Source: Histomonas meleagridis 2922-C6/04-290x (Eukaryota; Protista; Parabasalia). From it: a stretch of 64,000 nt of DNA. Below are positions 2,047 through 10,639 of this stretch, piece by piece. A program made the position numbers and the translations under genes. The notes beneath the pieces are model-generated. The model did not search any database. It worked only from the letters and a program-made list of their open reading frames with translations, and was not told the DNA's origin. Within the stretch, counting starts at the first letter, position 1. Each line of letters starts with the position of its first letter. The stretch covers positions 1-64,000 of the forward strand of contig JAANOX010000232.1 of the NCBI GenBank assembly GCA_020184695.1. Reading direction: 5' to 3'.

Positions 2047-3012
2047 ATGACAAATTTAAGAGGAAATCAATCTCAACGAATACGCCAAGCCGTTATGACC
2101 ACTCGGAAAAATCAAATCAAATATGCACAAGAGAAGCGACGTTATGAAGATGAACTTCAAGAACAAGAAGAAGAAATTCAACTTGAGCAATTCAAACTCT
2201 CCAAACAAAAAGAAGAAAAAGAGCGCCTAAAGACTATCAAAAAGAAAAAAGAACTCGAAGCCACTTATAAGCAACAACTTGCTGATGTTGCTGCACGTAA
2301 AAAGCGAGAACGCGATGAAGAGATTGCATATGAAAATGAACTTAAGAAACAAGATATCGAACTCCAAAAGCAAGAAAACATTCGACAAGAGAAACTTCGA
2401 CAACTTGCCAAAGAGCGCCGGGAAGAATTCATCAAGAAGAACGAAGAGTTACTAATGCGCAAAGAGCGACGAATTGAAGAAGATCTCGAATACGAGAAAA
2501 AGATCCAAAAAGAAAACGCGGAAATGCAGCAGCGTCAAGAAGAGCGACGTAAGGAAGATGAAAGACGTCGATATATGCGCACAGAGATACGAAATCGATT
2601 CATCGAAGCGCAGACGAAAGAACTTGCAAAGAAAACGCAACGCGAAGAACGAATTTTAGACGCCGCTGAATCGGCAGCACTAAAAGCACAAGAGGAACGA
2701 ATTGCAGCGATGCAAACAGCGAAAGAAAACTTGGAAAAGGAAAGACACGACTATTGGCTGATGTTACAAAGGGAAAAAACAGCGCGAAGGAAAACAAGGC
2801 CGAAGAAACCATATCCATATCACAATGATAATGGTTACGATGAAGAGAAACATAAACAAATGCAAAGGAAAATGGAAGAAGACAAAATTAGGCAGTTCCA
2901 GTTGAAGCAAATAGAGGAAAGAAAACAAAGGGAAAAGAAAGAGATAGAAGAGGATAGAGAATTGGATAAGAAAATGTTACAGTGCAGTATATTTAATGAA
3001 GAAGAATGGTGA
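2047..3012 (+). CDS. E/K/R/Q-rich coiled-coil protein, trichohyalin-plectin-homology (TPH; CFAP45/CFAP53/MNS1-like) type
   Basis: 321-aa continuous charged coiled coil. A possible N-terminal extension from ATG 1827 would need a frameshift near 1975-1995. Confidence 0.6.
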   Translation: MTNLRGNQSQRIRQAVMTTRKNQIKYAQEKRRYEDELQEQEEEIQLEQFKLSKQKEEKERLKTIKKKKELEATYKQQLADVAARKKRERDEEIAYENELKKQDIELQKQENIRQEKLRQLAKERREEFIKKNEELLMRKERRIEEDLEYEKKIQKENAEMQQRQEERRKEDERRRYMRTEIRNRFIEAQTKELAKKTQREERILDAAESAALKAQEERIAAMQTAKENLEKERHDYWLMLQREKTARRKTRPKKPYPYHNDNGYDEEKHKQMQRKMEEDKIRQFQLKQIEERKQREKKEIEEDRELDKKMLQCSIFNEEEW

Positions 3013-3122
3013 AAAATTATAAATTATATAAAATTTTAAAATTATGGAATTTGTTGTTTGTTATTGTTTAAACTCATAAATTGTTCTATATGTCTGAACT
3101 AATGAACATTTAAGCTTTAATT

Positions 3123-3127
3123 TCATT
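3123..3127 (+). promoter_or_regulatory. Trichomonad-type initiator (Inr) TCATT upstream of the array protein gene; repeated in each unit
   Basis: tttTCATTttttaattATG, 13 nt before the ATG; matches the known TCA(T/C)(T/A) Inr consensus. Confidence 0.55.
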
Positions 3128-3135
3128 TTTTAATT

Positions 3136-3789
3136 ATGTTTGGTTATTTTACTGATCCATTTTATGATCCATTCGAATATAGACCAATAAGGATTTATCA
3201 TCCATTTAATGCGATGAATAGATACTTTAATAATCTTGAACATCGTTTAAATTCCTTATTTGCTGATGCATTTGATGAAGAATTTAATAATATGATTGAA
3301 CAAGATAAACCTAAAGAAGAGAAAGAACAAAAAGGAACAAAAAAAGAAGAAAAAAACCTAAAGAAGAAACACAACAAAAAGATTGTTAAAAAAAGAATGA
3401 AAAATTATATTCCACAAAATTATTATAGAACTTATTCATCACAAAGATACTTTAATGGTAATGAAAAAAATTCGAAGAAATGCGTGAACAAGCTAATGAT
3501 GTTCATAAAACATATATTTCTAAAATTAAAAGAATGGGTAATCGTAGGGTTCAAGAAGATAAAGGTGAAGATAAAGAAGGTAAGAAAAACAACTAAAGAA
3601 ACTTGGCATAATGTTGGTGAAGATGAAATTGATGCATTTGAAAATGAATGGTCTTTAAGACGTGGTATTGAAGCTATTGGTAGTAAAAATGAAGAAAAAC
3701 CTGCAATTAAATCAGAAAATACAGAGAAAAAAGAAGAACCTAAAGAAGAAACTAAGGAAGAACCTAAAGAAACAAAAGAACAACAATAA
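3136..3789 (+). CDS. Myeloid leukemia factor (MLF)-like protein, array copy 1 (local compensating frameshifts)
   Basis: Consensus across copies is YYRTYSSQRY..EEIREQTNDGDKTYISKIKRIGNRWVQVDEVVDKEGKKTTKETWHNVGEDEIDAFENEW. This resembles the MLF C-terminal core (..I.DR....TG...Q...NL.E.E..AF..EW). The N-terminus is DPF-rich. Confidence 0.6.
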   Translation: MFGYFTDPFYDPFEYRPIRIYHPFNAMNRYFNNLEHRLNSLFADAFDEEFNNMIEQDKPKEEKEQKGTKKEEKNLKKKHNKKIVKKRMKNYIPQNYYRTYSSQRYFNGNEKNSKKCVNKLMMFIKHIFLKLKEWVIVGFKKIKVKIKKVRKTTKETWHNVGEDEIDAFENEWSLRRGIEAIGSKNEEKPAIKSENTEKKEEPKEETKEEPKETKEQQ

Positions 3790-3961
3790 AAATATTAAAT
3801 AAAAATATAAATTAATTAAATTTTATATTCTTTTTTTAAAATTAAATTAATAAATCATTAATAAATAAATCATTAATAAATAAATCATTATCAAGTTAAA
3901 TTATTAATTTTTTATTAATTAATTATTCAAAATATAATTTTATATTAATGTAAAAATAAAT

Positions 3962-3967
3962 AAAAAA
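3962..3967 (-). terminator. Pol III oligo-T terminator (T6) after 5S rRNA; also at 5160-5165 and 6358-6363
   Basis: A6 on the + strand immediately abuts the 5S 3' end in all three copies. Confidence 0.8.
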
Positions 3968-4085
3968 GGAAGCAGCACCATACGTTCCCAGGAAGTCTCC
4001 CAGCCTAGTACTGATATGGCCCGCGATTGCTTAATTTCCAGGTTCGAAATGGAGCTGGATGTATCCAATCGGGTATGGCCGCTTC
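3968..4085 (-). rRNA. 5S: 5S rRNA copy 1
   Basis: 118 nt, GAAGCGGCCATACC...TTAAGC...AGTACTAGGCTGGGAGACTTCCTGGGAA...GGTGCTGCTTCC. Helix I pairs GAAGCGGC with GCTGCTTC; box A/box C-like internal elements and a T6 terminator are present. Confidence 0.96.
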
Positions 4086-4332
4086 AATAATATGTTTTAT
4101 TATACATTCTTAATACTTAATATTTATTAATTAAAATTTTATTTAAATGACATTGGGGGGTCTTTTTTATCATCACTTTCATTTTTCTTCTAATATAAAC
4201 CATACAAAAGTCAACGATACATATTTTTTAAAAGTTATTTGATCGGTTATTTAATTCCTGAAAAATTCAATTAATGTGGTGATTTAAATTCTGAACTAAT
4301 GAACATTTAAGCTTTAATTTCATTTTTTAATT

Positions 4333-4984
4333 ATGTTTGGTTATTTTACTGATCCATTTTATGATCCATTCGAATATAGACCAATAAGGATTTATCATCC
4401 ATTTAATGCGATGAATAGATACTTTAATAATCTTGAACATCGTTTAAATTCCTTATTTGCTGATGCATTTGATGAAGAATTTAATAATATGATTGAACAA
4501 GATAAACCTAAAGAAGAGAAAGAACAAAAGGAACAAAAAGAGAAGAAAAAAACCTAAAGAAGAAACACAACAAAAAGATTGTTAAAAAAAGAATGAAAAA
4601 TTATATTCCACAAAAGTTATTATAGAACTTATTCATCACAAAGATACTTTAATGGTAATGAAAAATTCGAAGAAATTCGTGAACAAACTAATGATGGTGA
4701 TAAAACATATATTTCTAAAATTAAAAGAATTGGTAATCGTTGGGTTCAAGTAGATGAAGTTGTAGATAAAGAAGGTAAGAAAACAACTAAAGAAACTTGG
4801 CATAATGTTGGTGAAGATGAAATTGATGCATTTGAAAATGAATGGTCTTTAAGACGTGGTATTGAAGCTATTGGTAGTAAAAATGAAGAAAAACCTGCAA
4901 TTAAATCAGAAAATACAGAGAAAAAAGAAGAACCTAAAGAAGAAACTAAGGAAGAACCTAAAGAAACAAAAAGAACAACAATAA
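4333..4984 (+). CDS. MLF-like protein, array copy 2 (frameshifted in A-runs: assembly error or pseudogene)
   Basis: Near-identical to copy 1; reading frame broken near 4545-4600. Confidence 0.55.
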
Positions 4985-5165
4985 AAATATTAAATAAAAA
5001 TATAAATTAATTAAATTTTATATTCTTTTTTTTTTAAAATTAAATTAATAAATCATTAATAAATAAATCATTAATAAATAAATCATTATCAAGTTAAATT
5101 ATTAATTTTTTATTAATTAATTATTCAAAATATAATTTTATATTAATGTAAAAATAAATAAAAAA

Positions 5166-5283
5166 GGAAGCAGCACCATACGTTCCCAGGAAGTCTCCCA
5201 GCCTAGTACTGATATGGCCCGCGATTGCTTAATTTCCAGGTTCGAAATGGAGCTGGATGTATCCAATCGGGTATGGCCGCTTC
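5166..5283 (-). rRNA. 5S: 5S rRNA copy 2
   Basis: Identical to copy 1. Confidence 0.96.
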
Positions 5284-5531
5284 AATAATATGTTTTATTA
5301 TACATTCTTAATACTTAATATTTATTAATTAAAATTTTATTTAAATGACATTGGGGGGTCTTTTTTATCATCACTTTCATTTTTCTTCTAATATAAACCA
5401 TACAAAAGTCAACGATACATATTTTTTAAAAGTTATTTGATCGGTTATTTAATTCCTGAAAAATTTCAATTAATGTGGTGATTTAAATTCTGAACTAATG
5501 AACATTTAAGCTTTAATTTCATTTTTTAATT

Positions 5532-6185
5532 ATGTTTGGTTATTTTACTGATCCATTTTATGATCCATTCGAATATAGACCAATAAGGATTTATCATCCA
5601 TTTAATGCGATGAATAGATACTTTAATAATCTTGAACATCGTTTAAATTCCTTATTTGCTGATGCATTTGATGAAGAATTTAATAATATGATTGAACAAG
5701 ATAAACCTAAAGAAGAGAAAGAACAAAAGGAACACAAAAAGAAGAAAAAAACCTAAAGAAGAAACACAACAAAAGTTTGTTAAAAAAAGAATGAAAAATT
5801 ATATTCCACAAAAATTATTATAGAACTTATTCATCACAAAGATACTTTAATGGTAATGAAAAAAATTCGAAGAAATTCGTGAACAAACTAATGATGGTGA
5901 TAAAAACATATATTTCTAAAATTAAAAGAATTGGTAATCGTTGGGTTCAAGTAGATGAAGTTGTAGATAAAGAAGGTAAGAAAACAACTAAAGAAACTTG
6001 GCATAATGTTGGTGAAGATGAAATTGATGCATTTGAAAATGAATGGTCTTTAAGACGTGGTATTGAAGCTATTGGTAGTAAAAATGAAGAAAAACCTGCA
6101 ATTAAATCAGAAAATACAGAGAAAAAAGAAGAACCTAAAGAAGAAACTAAGGAAGAACCTAAAGAAACAAAAAGAACAACAATAA
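5532..6185 (+). CDS. MLF-like protein, array copy 3 (frameshifted in A-runs)
   Basis: Near-identical to the other copies; split into ORFs 5532-5756 and 5879-6211. Confidence 0.55.
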
Positions 6186-6363
6186 AAATATTAAATAAAA
6201 ATATAAATTAATTAAATTTTATATTCTTTTTTTAAAATTAAATTAATAAATCATTAATAAATAAATCATTAATAAATAAATCATTATCAAGTTAAATTAT
6301 TAATTTTTTATTAATTAATTATTCAAAATATAATTTTATATTAATGTAAAAATAAATAAAAAA

Positions 6364-6481
6364 GGAAGCAGCACCATACGTTCCCAGGAAGTCTCCCAGC
6401 CTAGTACTGATATGGCCCGCGATTGCTTAATTTCCAGGTTCGAAATGGAGCTGGATGTATCCAATCGGGTATGGCCGCTTC
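6364..6481 (-). rRNA. 5S: 5S rRNA copy 3
   Basis: Identical to copy 1. Confidence 0.96.
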
Positions 6482-6730
6482 AATAATATGTTTTATTATA
6501 CATTCTTAATACTTAATATTTATTAATTAAAAATTTTATTTAAACGACATTGGGGGGTCATTTTTCTCATCACTTTCAATTTTCTTCTCATATAAACCAT
6601 ACAAAAGTCAACGATACATATTTTTTTAAAAGTTATTTGATCGGTTATTTAATTCCTGAAAAATTCAATTAATGTGGTGATTTAAATTCTGAACTAATGA
6701 ACATTTAAGCTTTAATTTCATTTTTTAATT

Positions 6731-7376
6731 ATGTTTGGTTATTTTACTGATCCATTTTATGATCCATTCGAATATAGACCAATAAGGATTTATCATCCAT
6801 TTAATGCGATGAATAGATACTTTAATAATCTTGAACATCGTTTAAATTCCTTATTTGCTGATGCATTTGATGAAGAATTTAATAATATGATTGAACAAGA
6901 TAAACCTAAAGAAGAGAAAGAACAAAAGGAAAAAAAAGAAGAAAAAAACCTAAAGAAGAAACACAACAAAAGATCGCTAAAAAGAATGAAAATTATATTC
7001 CACAAAAATTATTATAGAACTTATTCATCACAAAGATACTTTAATGGGAATGAAAAATTCGAAGAAATTCGTGAACAAACTAATGATGGTGATAAAACAT
7101 ATATTTCTAAAATTAAAAGAATTGGTAATCGTTGGGTTCAAGTAGATGAAGTTGTAGATAAAGAAGGTAAGAAAACAACTAAAGAAACTTGGCATAATGT
7201 TGGTGAAGATGAAAATTGATGCATTTGAAAATGAATGGTCTTTAAGACGTGGTATTGAAGCTATTGGTAGTAAAAATGAAGAAAAACCTGCAATTAAATC
7301 AGAAAATACAGAGAAAAAAGAAGAACCTAAAGAAGAAACTAAGGAAGAACCTAAAGAAACAAAAGAACAACAATAA
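6731..7376 (+). CDS. MLF-like protein, array copy 4 (extra A near 7212-7216 shifts the frame)
   Basis: ORF 6731-7219 plus a 3' part ending EQQ-TAA at 7376. Confidence 0.55.
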
Positions 7377-7882
7377 AAATATTAAATAAAAATATAAATT
7401 AATTAAATTTTATATTCTTTTTTTAAAATTAAATTAATAAATCATTAATAAATAAATCATTAATTTCAAATATTTTTATAAATCAAATCAAAATGCAAAT
7501 CATATATATATATATTCTCAATCTATGTCTTCATAAACAATATTATTATTACACCAACTAATGAATATAAAATAATAAATACCATCAATCAATTTTAAAT
7601 ATTTTTAATTCAATGTTGTAAAAAATAAACCACAGAAAAAGTCGGACGACGGTTAAAAGTGACACGTGGCACTGAAAAACTCAATCAACCAAATAAGTAA
7701 TCAAAGATTTGATAACATATTTCTGTCTGAGTACGTTAAGGGTGTAGTCCGACCAGATATGCATCTTTTAATTTTTCAAATAATGTTTCTTTTTTTTTCT
7801 TGTTTAAAATCTTTTTTTATTTTCCATAGCAAAATTTATATGTTTCTATTTATTCAAAAAATAACAAACAACAAATACTGTT

Positions 7883-10639
7883 TTATCCTTGTGAAACAGT
7901 GGGCAAAAATGGTTTTATTGGTGCTCTTTTAGGGTTCCATCCCAATGGTATAATTTTCTTCTGCACCAAAGAAGCGCTTTTTGGTAAAATAATTTTAGGC
8001 GCTCTCATAGACTTAGCGGACAGCAGCGGCGGCGGCGTTTGCCTTGGCAAGTTTAGAGCAAATCCACCACCAACGTAATGTAAATCTTTTAAGATGTTCT
8101 TTGTGTTATTTATTGCTGATGTGCTTGCTCTAATATTGTCAACTTTCTTTTTGGCTTCATTATATTCAGATTTCTCGTCAAGAATTAAAGATCTCATTAA
8201 ATCGATTTGTTCCTTTTGGTCATTTACTGTACCTTTTCTTTCGTTTAATTTATTCTCGTATGAATGGAGTTGTGATATTTTATGTTGAAGAATTTTGTTC
8301 CAATATTTATATTCTTCTTTAATATCATTATTATATCCTTTCAACACATGCTTCGATAAAGAATCGTTCTTTAGTTTTAACCTTTCTTCTAAAATTTTTA
8401 ATCTTTGAATTGAATTAATTTGAGTCATAATTCGATCTCTTAATTTAATACTTGTTTGAATTAAACGATATAATTCAGGATCTGAGCCTTCTAATAAACG
8501 CCATGGGTGAACATTCATTGGTCTATCCATTTCTTCTTGAATTGCTTTTCCCTTACATTGTTCCATCAAAATCGACTTCTGAATTCTGACTTTTTCAAAG
8601 CAAAGTTCTTTGAAATGTTTTGAATGATTCTGTAGTTTATTTCTTTCATTCAGTTCATATTCAATTTTTTCTTTGAGGTTTTGAATTACTTCAATTTGTT
8701 TTTTGTATTTTGACGCGCCGATTAATATTAGACCGTTTAAAGTATCTATTTTCGATTTGACAACAGAAATCTCTTTCATTTTTTTAGATATTTCTATGTT
8801 GAGATTAGTGTGAATGAACTCCAAATCTTTTTTAATTTGTTTTTGTTTCACTAAATCAATTTCAGCTTGCTTAATTAAGTATAAATTTCGTTGAATTTTG
8901 TTACGTTGTTCAGTAGTTTGATCGTCGAATTCTTTTGTTTTAATTTCGATTTCTTTTTTATTTTTTACTGTTTTTGTTATTAATTTATTAATTTTCTTTC
9001 TATTCATTCTTTCTTCTTTATACATTTTATCTTTTTCTAAAATTGTATTTTTTAAACTTTTTATATTATTTTCTAATTGTATATTATATTCATTTAATTT
9101 ATTGTTTTCCGAAATTGTAGTTTCAAGTTGTCTTTTACATATATCTCTATTGTTTTGCATTGTTTCTAGTATAACATTTTGATGATTAATTTGGGATTTT
9201 AAATTTGTTAAATTTAAATTCAATTCATCGATTTGTTGTTCTTTAATTTTTACTTCTTCAATTATTTGTTTGTGATTCGAAATTATATTTACAGTATTTG
9301 TTTGATAATTTTCGATTTCAGTGTTTATTTTATTTATTAAATTCTTATCATCAATTTCTTTTTTTTCGAATTTCGCAATTTCATTTGTAACTACTAATGA
9401 TTGTAATTCAGTTGTTTTTGTTTCTTTTGTTTCTTCGACTTTTTTCGTTGAGATTTTATTGTTTTCATATCGATTTAAATCAATTTCACGTTTTAGTGAT
9501 GAGTTTTGTAATTCTTTCGAATGTTTATTCGATTTTAATATATGTATTTCATTTTGTTTTGTTGAAAGTTCATTTCTCTTTTGGGATTTTTCATTTATTA
9601 TTTTTTCATGTAATTTCTTTTCGTTTATTAAATCTTGCTTTTGCTTTTTAATGTTTTCATTTTCTTCTTTAAGTTTTTGCTGAAAATTTTCTTTTTCTTT
9701 TTTCTTTTGATTTATTATATCATTTATTTCGTTTATTTCTTCTAGTTTTTGATCATTTTCTTTCGCTTTGTCTTCTTTAATTATTTGTATTGTTTTCTTG
9801 TTTTGTAAATTAAATTCTTTTTCATCAATTAAAGCTTTTTGATAATTTTCATCTTCGTTTAATATCGACTTTATTTCATAAAGTTTCTCTTTTTGTTCTT
9901 TAATCTTTTGTTTATTATCATCAAATGTTTTTAATAAATCCGAATTCTCGTTTTTTAGATTTAACAATGTTTGATATGTTTCATTTGTTTCTTTGGAAAT
10001 TTCAATGTTTTTATTTTGCTCTTTTTCAAGCTCACTAATTAACTGTTGGTTTTCTAAAGTTAATGAATTTGTGTTTTCTAAGATTTGAGCTTTAGATTGT
10101 ATGTTTTTTGTGACTTCATTTGTTAAAGATTTAATTTGTATTGATTGTGTCTCAGTTTCTTTCTTAAGAGATGTAACAGAATCTTGGATTTCTTGAAGTG
10201 TTAAATCTGATTGTTGTTGTTTACCTTCGTCAATACTTCTTGCAAGTGAATTGATTTCTTGTTTTAATCCTTCAATTACCTCATTAGTTTTTTCTTCTCG
10301 TTCTTGAGAAGCTTCTACTAATTTCCATGCTTTTTCAAATTCGAAACGTAAATTTATTAATGTTTTTTGGTCATCTTTTGATAAATTCATAATTGTGTTT
10401 ACTTTATTAGCATTAGCTAAAATTTCACTGTTTAAAGCCTTACATTTTTCAACCAATATCGCATTTTTTTCATGTGATTTAAGAAGTTCTGAATGAAGTT
10501 TTTCATATTCTTCTCTAAATTTTTCCAATGATTTATCAGTCATTAAATCTTGAACGACCTTATGAAATTCTTTTTCCATATCATTGGGATCAGTTGAATC
10601 ATTTGTATCATCATTATCATCCAATTTATTTTTTTTCAT
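7883..10639 (-). CDS. CFAP58: Cilia- and flagella-associated protein 58-like coiled-coil protein
   Basis: MEKEFHKVVQDLMTDKSLEKFREEYEKLH and RPMNVHPWRLLEGSDP match the conserved N- and C-terminal blocks of CFAP58/CCDC147. Confidence 0.85.
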   Translation of the reverse strand: MKKNKLDDNDDTNDSTDPNDMEKEFHKVVQDLMTDKSLEKFREEYEKLHSELLKSHEKNAILVEKCKALNSEILANANKVNTIMNLSKDDQKTLINLRFEFEKAWKLVEASQEREEKTNEVIEGLKQEINSLARSIDEGKQQQSDLTLQEIQDSVTSLKKETETQSIQIKSLTNEVTKNIQSKAQILENTNSLTLENQQLISELEKEQNKNIEISKETNETYQTLLNLKNENSDLLKTFDDNKQKIKEQKEKLYEIKSILNEDENYQKALIDEKEFNLQNKKTIQIIKEDKAKENDQKLEEINEINDIINQKKKEKENFQQKLKEENENIKKQKQDLINEKKLHEKIINEKSQKRNELSTKQNEIHILKSNKHSKELQNSSLKREIDLNRYENNKISTKKVEETKETKTTELQSLVVTNEIAKFEKKEIDDKNLINKINTEIENYQTNTVNIISNHKQIIEEVKIKEQQIDELNLNLTNLKSQINHQNVILETMQNNRDICKRQLETTISENNKLNEYNIQLENNIKSLKNTILEKDKMYKEERMNRKKINKLITKTVKNKKEIEIKTKEFDDQTTEQRNKIQRNLYLIKQAEIDLVKQKQIKKDLEFIHTNLNIEISKKMKEISVVKSKIDTLNGLILIGASKYKKQIEVIQNLKEKIEYELNERNKLQNHSKHFKELCFEKVRIQKSILMEQCKGKAIQEEMDRPMNVHPWRLLEGSDPELYRLIQTSIKLRDRIMTQINSIQRLKILEERLKLKNDSLSKHVLKGYNNDIKEEYKYWNKILQHKISQLHSYENKLNERKGTVNDQKEQIDLMRSLILDEKSEYNEAKKKVDNIRASTSAINNTKNILKDLHYVGGGFALNLPRQTPPPLLSAKSMRAPKIILPKSASLVQKKIIPLGWNPKRAPIKPFLPTVSQG

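Follow-up and report, generated by a model that had tools for sequence, protein, structure and literature searches.

A tandem unit joining 5S rRNA genes to an MLF-like protein gene in Histomonas meleagridis

We describe the organization of the 5S ribosomal DNA (rDNA) of the poultry parasite Histomonas meleagridis, in which 5S rRNA genes alternate with copies of an MLF-like protein gene in a tandem unit of about 1.2 kb. The analysis departs from an array at positions 3093 to 7464 of the window, by which we mean the first 64,000 nucleotides of contig JAANOX010000232.1 (C232; other contigs are cited in the same manner), and extends to the whole attenuated-strain assembly, comprising 281 contigs and 43,133,364 bp.

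Layout of the array

Direct-repeat analysis combined with alignment resolves the array into 3.65 head-to-tail units of about 1198 bp, which measure 1197, 1199 and 1199 bp in a four-way alignment and end in a partial fourth unit of 777 bp. Each unit carries one 5S rRNA gene on the reverse strand and one roughly 650-bp MLF-like gene on the forward strand, for a total of three and four copies, respectively (Table 1), and the units are 97–100% alike among themselves. The original prediction, made from the letters of the window alone, had proposed an alternation of four forward protein genes with three identical reverse 5S copies, separated by about 178 bp tail-to-tail and 247 bp head-to-head. Rfam, the repeat analysis and the positions of the ATG codons bear this layout out, with measured spacers of 177 and 246 bp and three 5S copies of identical sequence.

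At Rfam gathering thresholds, the 64-kb window contains three 5S rRNA genes and no other RNA family. All three copies reach 88.3 bits with the RF00001 covariance model, for which the gathering score is 38, and cover the model in full, confirming their membership in the 5S family.

Table 1. Features of the tandem array in the window (contig C232).
Feature	Position	Strand	Remarks
Array left edge, final 43 bp of head spacer	3093..3135	+	copy 1: proximal promoter with a short 5′ leader; identical in 4/4 units
MLF-like gene copy 1	3136..3789	+	217 aa open; middle out of frame relative to intact 213-aa P0001
Tail-to-tail spacer, 177 bp	3790..3966	.	AT-rich; contains the 15-bp AATAAATAAATCATT about three times at 3845-3890
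5S rRNA gene 1	3967..4086	-	RF00001, 88.3 bits, model positions 1-120; followed by T6 on its own strand
Head-to-head spacer, 246 bp	4087..4332	.	TATA-like box in the ~35 bp at the 5S 5′ end; ~140 bp at the gene conserved between unit types
MLF-like gene copy 2	4333..4984	+	stop after 74 codons; N- and C-terminal parts in the same frame, middle garbled (A-run lengths)
5S rRNA gene 2	5165..5284	-	RF00001
MLF-like gene copy 3	5532..6185	+	frame-broken at A-runs
5S rRNA gene 3	6363..6482	-	RF00001
MLF-like gene copy 4	6731..7376	+	162 aa open through the conserved core; extra A at ~7213 shifts the frame
Partial tail spacer	7377..7464	.	array end; no fourth 5S gene

Linkage across the genome

When the whole assembly was searched with the covariance model and at the DNA level, both approaches gave the same 17 full-length 5S genes, distributed over eight contigs, with four genes each on C237 and C278, three on C232, two on C189 and one each on C264, C236, C257 and C82. 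All 5S loci and all loci matching the protein were compared by mapping onto each of them the five parts of the window unit. In this comparison, 16 of the 17 5S genes lie beside an MLF-like gene copy or a fragment of one, always in the same relative orientation; the exception, on C82, lacks a coding remnant and retains some 58 bp of tail spacer from the unit. Linkage is thus the rule rather than an orphan capture, and the co-amplified composite of RNA polymerase II (Pol II) and RNA polymerase III (Pol III) genes put forward in the original prediction is upheld as the main form of 5S organization in this genome.

Arrays similar to the 3.65 units of the window are present on C237, C278, C189 and C264, and assembled arrays range from one to four units, as counted in an assembly that is prone to collapse such repeats. 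Because C189 is a 1684-bp contig made only of a 5S gene, a protein gene and a second 5S gene, and because the unit on C264 runs off the end of its contig, actual copy numbers are probably higher. The protein gene, or pieces of it, also occurs without 5S at about 12 loci (C68, C69, C214, C17, C271, C270, C35, C130, C72, C145, C224 and C26), and the numbers of the two genes are unequal within linked arrays as well, with four protein genes to three 5S genes in the window and three to four on C278.

Seven partial 5S-like matches were considered as hidden 5S genes and rejected, as they belong to a repeat, at least 0.87 kb long and scattered over the genome in about eight copies of 91–98% identity (C273:201798-202663, C233, C48, two on C21, C205, C258 and C11). 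Within the repeat are a perfect 17-bp hairpin and a 66-nt stretch derived from nt 36-102 of 5S, to which it is about 82% identical (antisense relative to the alignment). No 5S gene is called there by Rfam, and the repeat may be a transposable element with a captured 5S fragment.

The linked units fall into two types. Type A comprises the units of C232 and C264, whose spacers are 98–100% identical to each other, and type B those of C237, C278 and C236, with C189 also assigned to it on the basis of its head-spacer alignment. The type-A protein lacks the Val of DPF-V-EYRP. Between the two types, identity reaches 100% in the 5S gene and 92–97% in the coding sequence, while it amounts to 71–77% in the tail spacer and to about 75% in the gene-proximal 140 bp or so of the head spacer; in the 5S-proximal part of the head spacer (about 100 bp, beyond its first ~35 nt) there is no detectable match. 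Nearly uniform within the window and divergent between types in all but the invariant 5S gene, the units follow the pattern of concerted evolution. In each type-A tail spacer, between the stop codon and the 5S 3′ end, the 15-bp sequence AATAAATAAATCATT recurs about three times (3845-3890, 5043-5088, 6241-6286 and 7432-7464 in the window); these repeats may hold poly(A) signals.

An alignment of the sequences on either side of the 17 5S genes brings out putative control signals. Each gene is directly followed at its 3′ end by a run of T residues, from T4 to T7, as expected for a Pol III termination signal; the run is T6 behind all three window copies, in agreement with the original prediction. 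About 30 nt downstream of the gene are also conserved, as is a TATA-like box located about 10–28 nt upstream, in the ~35 bp at the 5S 5′ end. In the tail spacer, the final 55 bp or so beside the 5S 3′ end is conserved across all unit types. The initiator-like TCATT that had been noted at each protein gene is indeed found 9–13 nt before the ATG in all four window copies (3123-3127 in copy 1), where none is expected by chance, and it is retained in type-B units and in the solo copy on C69. Initiator-driven promoters with short leaders are known from trichomonads, and the position of TCATT fits such a design. Beside the gene, about 140 bp of the head spacer is conserved between unit types and, in part, in the solo copy on C69. 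Because the 5S flanks are conserved and the region upstream of C69 resembles the gene-proximal head spacer, the unit seems to be composed of two autonomous modules, one of about 210 bp containing 5S and the other consisting of the protein gene and its promoter. A scan for bacterial promoters and terminators, a type of analysis irrelevant in this setting, showed nothing.

Identity, integrity and history of the partner gene

The assignment of the protein to the MLF family, proposed in the original prediction, stands on profile–profile kinship and falls short at the direct Pfam threshold. Against the gathering cut-off of 34.5 bits for PF10248 (Mlf1IP), the C-terminal piece scores 15.9 bits (E 0.013) and whole intact copies 7.8–10.1 bits, so that membership rests on transitive profile comparison. 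A word-based search identified 28 relatives, of which P0026 (44.4 bits) and P0028 (41.8 bits) pass PF10248; the closest database proteins are those of H. meleagridis. A phmmer search with the query protein matches P0026 with an E-value of 1.6e-10 among 5.8 billion sequences, and PF10248 is matched by 11 of 27 aligned family members, in the same region of the profile. Alignment with hhalign of a 14-sequence Histomonas-clade profile to P0026/P0028 yields a probability of 98.2% (E 4.6e-14) over 182 columns that include the N-terminal MF..F.DPF motif, and 29 of 30 named neighbours in a protein-language-model Atlas carry PF10248. By this transitive evidence, the 5S-linked protein is a divergent member of the MLF family.

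Its general properties are in keeping with this assignment. The protein has the size of human MLF1/2, Drosophila MLF and Giardia MLF (about 200–220 aa), and shares with MLF proteins the N-terminal motif, an acidic and lysine-rich middle of low complexity and a C-terminal core (profile positions ~87–173) of the form R-I-G-D/N ... D-K-x-G ... E-T ... N-V/I ... F ... E-W; unlike the MLF proteins in PF10248, a Histomonas copy taken alone scores below the cut-off. MLF proteins are largely disordered, and a profile search against PDB sequences returned nothing useful. We know of no multi-copy tandem organization of MLF genes elsewhere. The H. meleagridis genome also encodes MLF-like paralogues on C258 (2485-2964 of the examined stretch, reverse strand) and C45 (2372-2866, reverse strand) that have 38–39% identity, are not linked to 5S and lie nearer to the Pfam profile, at 26.5–29.3 bits.

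In GenBank/RefSeq, at least 16 H. meleagridis models of the family bear the name "cysteine protease" (KAH0806826-835, KAH0806599, KAH0801067, KAH0798314 and others; P0001, P0029-P0042). Pfam scans of the intact copies, with E-values up to 10, contain no peptidase family, and the top Atlas cluster has the same name while its members, from other protists, carry PF10248. On both counts, the label appears to be a propagated misnomer.

None of the four window copies has an intact reading frame in the assembly, a point that the original prediction overlooked. The open reading frame (ORF) list gives open stretches of 217, 74, 74+110 and 162 codons, the frames being broken by differences of 1–3 nt in the length of A-runs, and every one of the 14 indels that distinguish the window units falls in an A or T homopolymer. 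Oxford Nanopore reads were assembled with Flye, and the result was polished by racon with Illumina reads to a stated base accuracy of 99.79% (PMC8529796). Intact copies are found on C236 (221 aa, 5S-linked), on C189 (216 aa, with 5S on both sides) and, as solo genes, on C68 (222 aa) and C69 (220 aa). In the sister assembly, from the virulent strain, KAH0806826 (P0001; 213 aa) corresponds to the product of a window copy with its A-run lengths in frame. It belongs to a set of ten consecutively numbered family models, KAH0806826-KAH0806835, on a single 1.38-Mb contig, and the middle region is intact in at least five of these, which differ only by a C-terminal A-run shift. The ORFs flanking the window array (2047-3012, forward, 321 aa; 7883-10639, reverse, 918 aa) encode K/E-rich, coiled-coil-like proteins and are rich in A-runs yet unbroken, indicating that polishing works in unique sequence beside the error-laden tandem units.

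Selection on the gene was assessed with Nei–Gojobori estimates of the ratio of non-synonymous to synonymous substitution rates (dN/dS), which are based on few differences. A window copy compared with C236 over its 113 C-terminal codons gives a ratio of 0.04 (six synonymous differences and one non-synonymous); the ratio is 0.07–0.24 among intact copies and 0.07–0.29 in other comparisons among the expanded copies; relative to the solo gene on C69, it is 0.03–0.11 for expanded copies and 0.10–0.11 for intact ones. At the level of sequence, the lineages between 5S-linked copies have clearly been subject to purifying selection. At the protein level the family is detected, with KAH0806826, KAH0806828 and KAH0806599 listed in a re-analysis of the shotgun proteome (PMC9610433, Table S3). 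Given indels confined to homopolymers, an assembly built from Nanopore reads and polished with racon, an intact protein in the sister assembly, low dN/dS and this proteome listing, the window frameshifts are probably assembly or polishing errors in the A-runs of a tandem repeat, in which the placement of short reads is ambiguous.

A DNA tree computed with FastTree and rooted on Dientamoeba-like homologues from metagenomes places C69 as the sister of all remaining Histomonas copies and nests every other solo copy or fragment among the 5S-linked ones. The order of events suggested by this tree depends on one topology with short branches. The possibility that the solo copies are retrocopies was contemplated, as the likeness of C68 begins 21 bp upstream of the ATG, and dropped, as C69 and C271 share at least 140 bp of promoter-side sequence.

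The metagenomic homologues come from a scan that returned 11 short contigs, nine of them with 60–62% identity and probably Dientamoeba-like; human gut is stated as the source of one. None of these contigs contains a 5S gene, with flanks that are short and one contig that is chimeric, which weakly suggests that the linkage is absent from a Dientamoeba-like relative. The contig in question, which encodes the Dientamoeba-like homologue, runs into phage-like capsid and head-tail genes (L037:844-2450) and is probably a chimera, making its downstream context uninformative. With C69 branching first and no 5S in the short flanks of the Dientamoeba-like homologues, the expansion looks lineage-specific, as the original prediction had it.

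Origin and significance of the composite unit

We consider it probable that the 5S rDNA of H. meleagridis is organized as a two-module unit of about 1.2 kb into which an MLF-family gene was captured and with which it was co-amplified. The first module would be a 5S gene read by Pol III from an internal promoter, with an upstream TATA-like box and a T-run terminator; the second, on the opposite strand, would be an MLF-family gene of about 215 codons with its own initiator-type Pol II promoter. In the proposed sequence of events, a pre-existing solo gene of the C69 type would have been duplicated into a 5S spacer, taking along some 140 bp of its promoter. Unequal exchange would then have amplified the composite into short arrays that became dispersed to at least seven loci, and some of the dispersed pieces would have lost their 5S gene afterwards, with homogenization acting strongly within arrays and weakly between them. 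Both modules are under selection, because 5S is identical where the spacers are 71–77% alike and because the dN/dS of the coding sequence is well below 1. The linkage itself is probably a by-product of co-amplification rather than a regulatory coupling.

Several observations weigh against this interpretation and must be set beside it. In addition to the sub-threshold Pfam scores, only two of the 14 5S-linked copies (C236 and C189) are intact in the assembly, several models in the sister assembly are truncated too, at 93–97 aa, and the peptides of the MLF-like family in the proteome are not assignable to single copies. Array copies also carry real internal deletions, of 187 bp in C237_b and 118 bp in C278_a, and part of the array is therefore truly degenerate; a deletion of 148 bp is present in the C270 copy, at a locus without 5S. 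These findings lend themselves to the alternative that the array copies are decaying passengers, with only 5S being maintained and the work of the protein done by C69, C68 and perhaps single units such as that of C236. Twelve frame-broken copies out of 14, the deletions, the garbled 3′ part of C278_b and the restriction of full-length intact copies to places outside multi-unit arrays all agree with it. Decay of this kind is difficult to reconcile with a dN/dS of 0.04–0.29 between linked copies of different unit types, with coding sequences far better conserved than the spacers around them, with window indels that all reside in homopolymers and with a sister assembly whose array copies have an intact middle and supply entries of the proteome, and we regard wholesale pseudogenization as unlikely. 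An artefactual origin of the interleaving, by chimeric or mis-collapsed joining of two repeats during assembly, might be suspected from the proximity of arrays to contig ends (the start of C232, the end of C264) and from C189, whose 1684 bp hold nothing but the unit. The same arrangement, however, appears on seven contigs and in both of the diverged unit types, the neighbouring genes at C236 and in the window are unique, and an independent assembly of the sister strain has consecutive models of the same gene, rendering this explanation highly improbable.

It can also be conceived that the unit has been selected for what it joins, so that the level of an MLF-type proteostasis factor would follow the output of 5S and ribosomes, for example through shared open chromatin or a shared divergent control region. 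Neither the arrangement nor its orientation varies between the unit types or among the linked loci, selection acts on both modules, and Giardia MLF homologues act in proteotoxic stress responses (PMC11527388, PMC10127389). Gene and 5S numbers are nevertheless not locked to each other, as seen from the ratios in the window and on C278 and from the gene-only loci, two of which (C68 and C69) are intact; the half of the head spacer next to 5S and the half next to the gene evolve separately from each other, with no shared element seen; and the linkage of 5S to unrelated families is common and usually read as co-amplification (PMC3464664). Functional coupling is, in our judgement, an improbable account, and the same low likelihood attaches to its more explicit version, a selected two-polymerase module in which the head spacer or shared chromatin would scale an MLF-type co-factor with 5S and ribosomes and array size would tune both. 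The suggestion in the original prediction of a dosage tie between the protein and 5S copy number is unsupported, given unequal counts, about 12 gene-only loci and deleted array copies. Co-amplification remains our preferred reading, and the persistence of the unit in two diverged types, under selection, leaves room for a benefit such as high expression from many copies.

Linkage of 5S to 35S rDNA, histone, spliced-leader and snRNA genes is well known (PMC3464664, citing Drouin and Moniz de Sa 1995), in agreement with the tendency of 5S to join other multigene repeats that the original prediction invoked. As in linked 5S repeats generally, the Histomonas 5S gene and its partner are co-amplified in one tandem unit that evolves in concert within arrays, and 5S is invariant while the spacers drift. 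The usual partners are classical high-copy tandem families, whereas the partner in Histomonas is a small family encoding a cytosolic-type protein and having solo copies, and the arrays, scattered among seven or more loci, are short (one to four assembled units, with ten consecutively numbered models in the sister assembly). In Tritrichomonas foetus, which belongs to the same order as Histomonas (Tritrichomonadida), the 5S spacers reportedly contain a ubiquitin gene (Torres-Machorro et al. 2009, Curr Genet 55:199-210); a 5S spacer would thus hold a Pol II protein gene in both organisms, with ubiquitin as the partner in one and an MLF-like protein in the other. Searchable literature contains no mention that we could find of a 5S/MLF linkage or of 5S organization in Histomonas, and the word rRNA is absent from the H. 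meleagridis genome paper (PMC8529796). The 5S/MLF unit is hence apparently an undescribed instance of a known phenomenon.

The results presented here bear on the use of existing genome resources as well as on the biology of the parasite. They flag homopolymer frame errors in the tandem copies of a Nanopore-based assembly, which affect gene counts and strain comparisons. The type-A locus is represented by ten consecutively numbered models in the virulent assembly and by four copies in the attenuated assembly, so that array size appears to differ between the two; a real difference between strains is not shown by these data, and would be worth attention if array size truly differed between virulent and attenuated parasites. 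The analysis also corrects the annotation of at least 16 models named as cysteine proteases, a class treated as virulence factors in H. meleagridis, to MLF-like proteins. Finally, it supplies the 5S rDNA organization of H. meleagridis and adds an MLF-like partner to the list of genes with which 5S has become linked.

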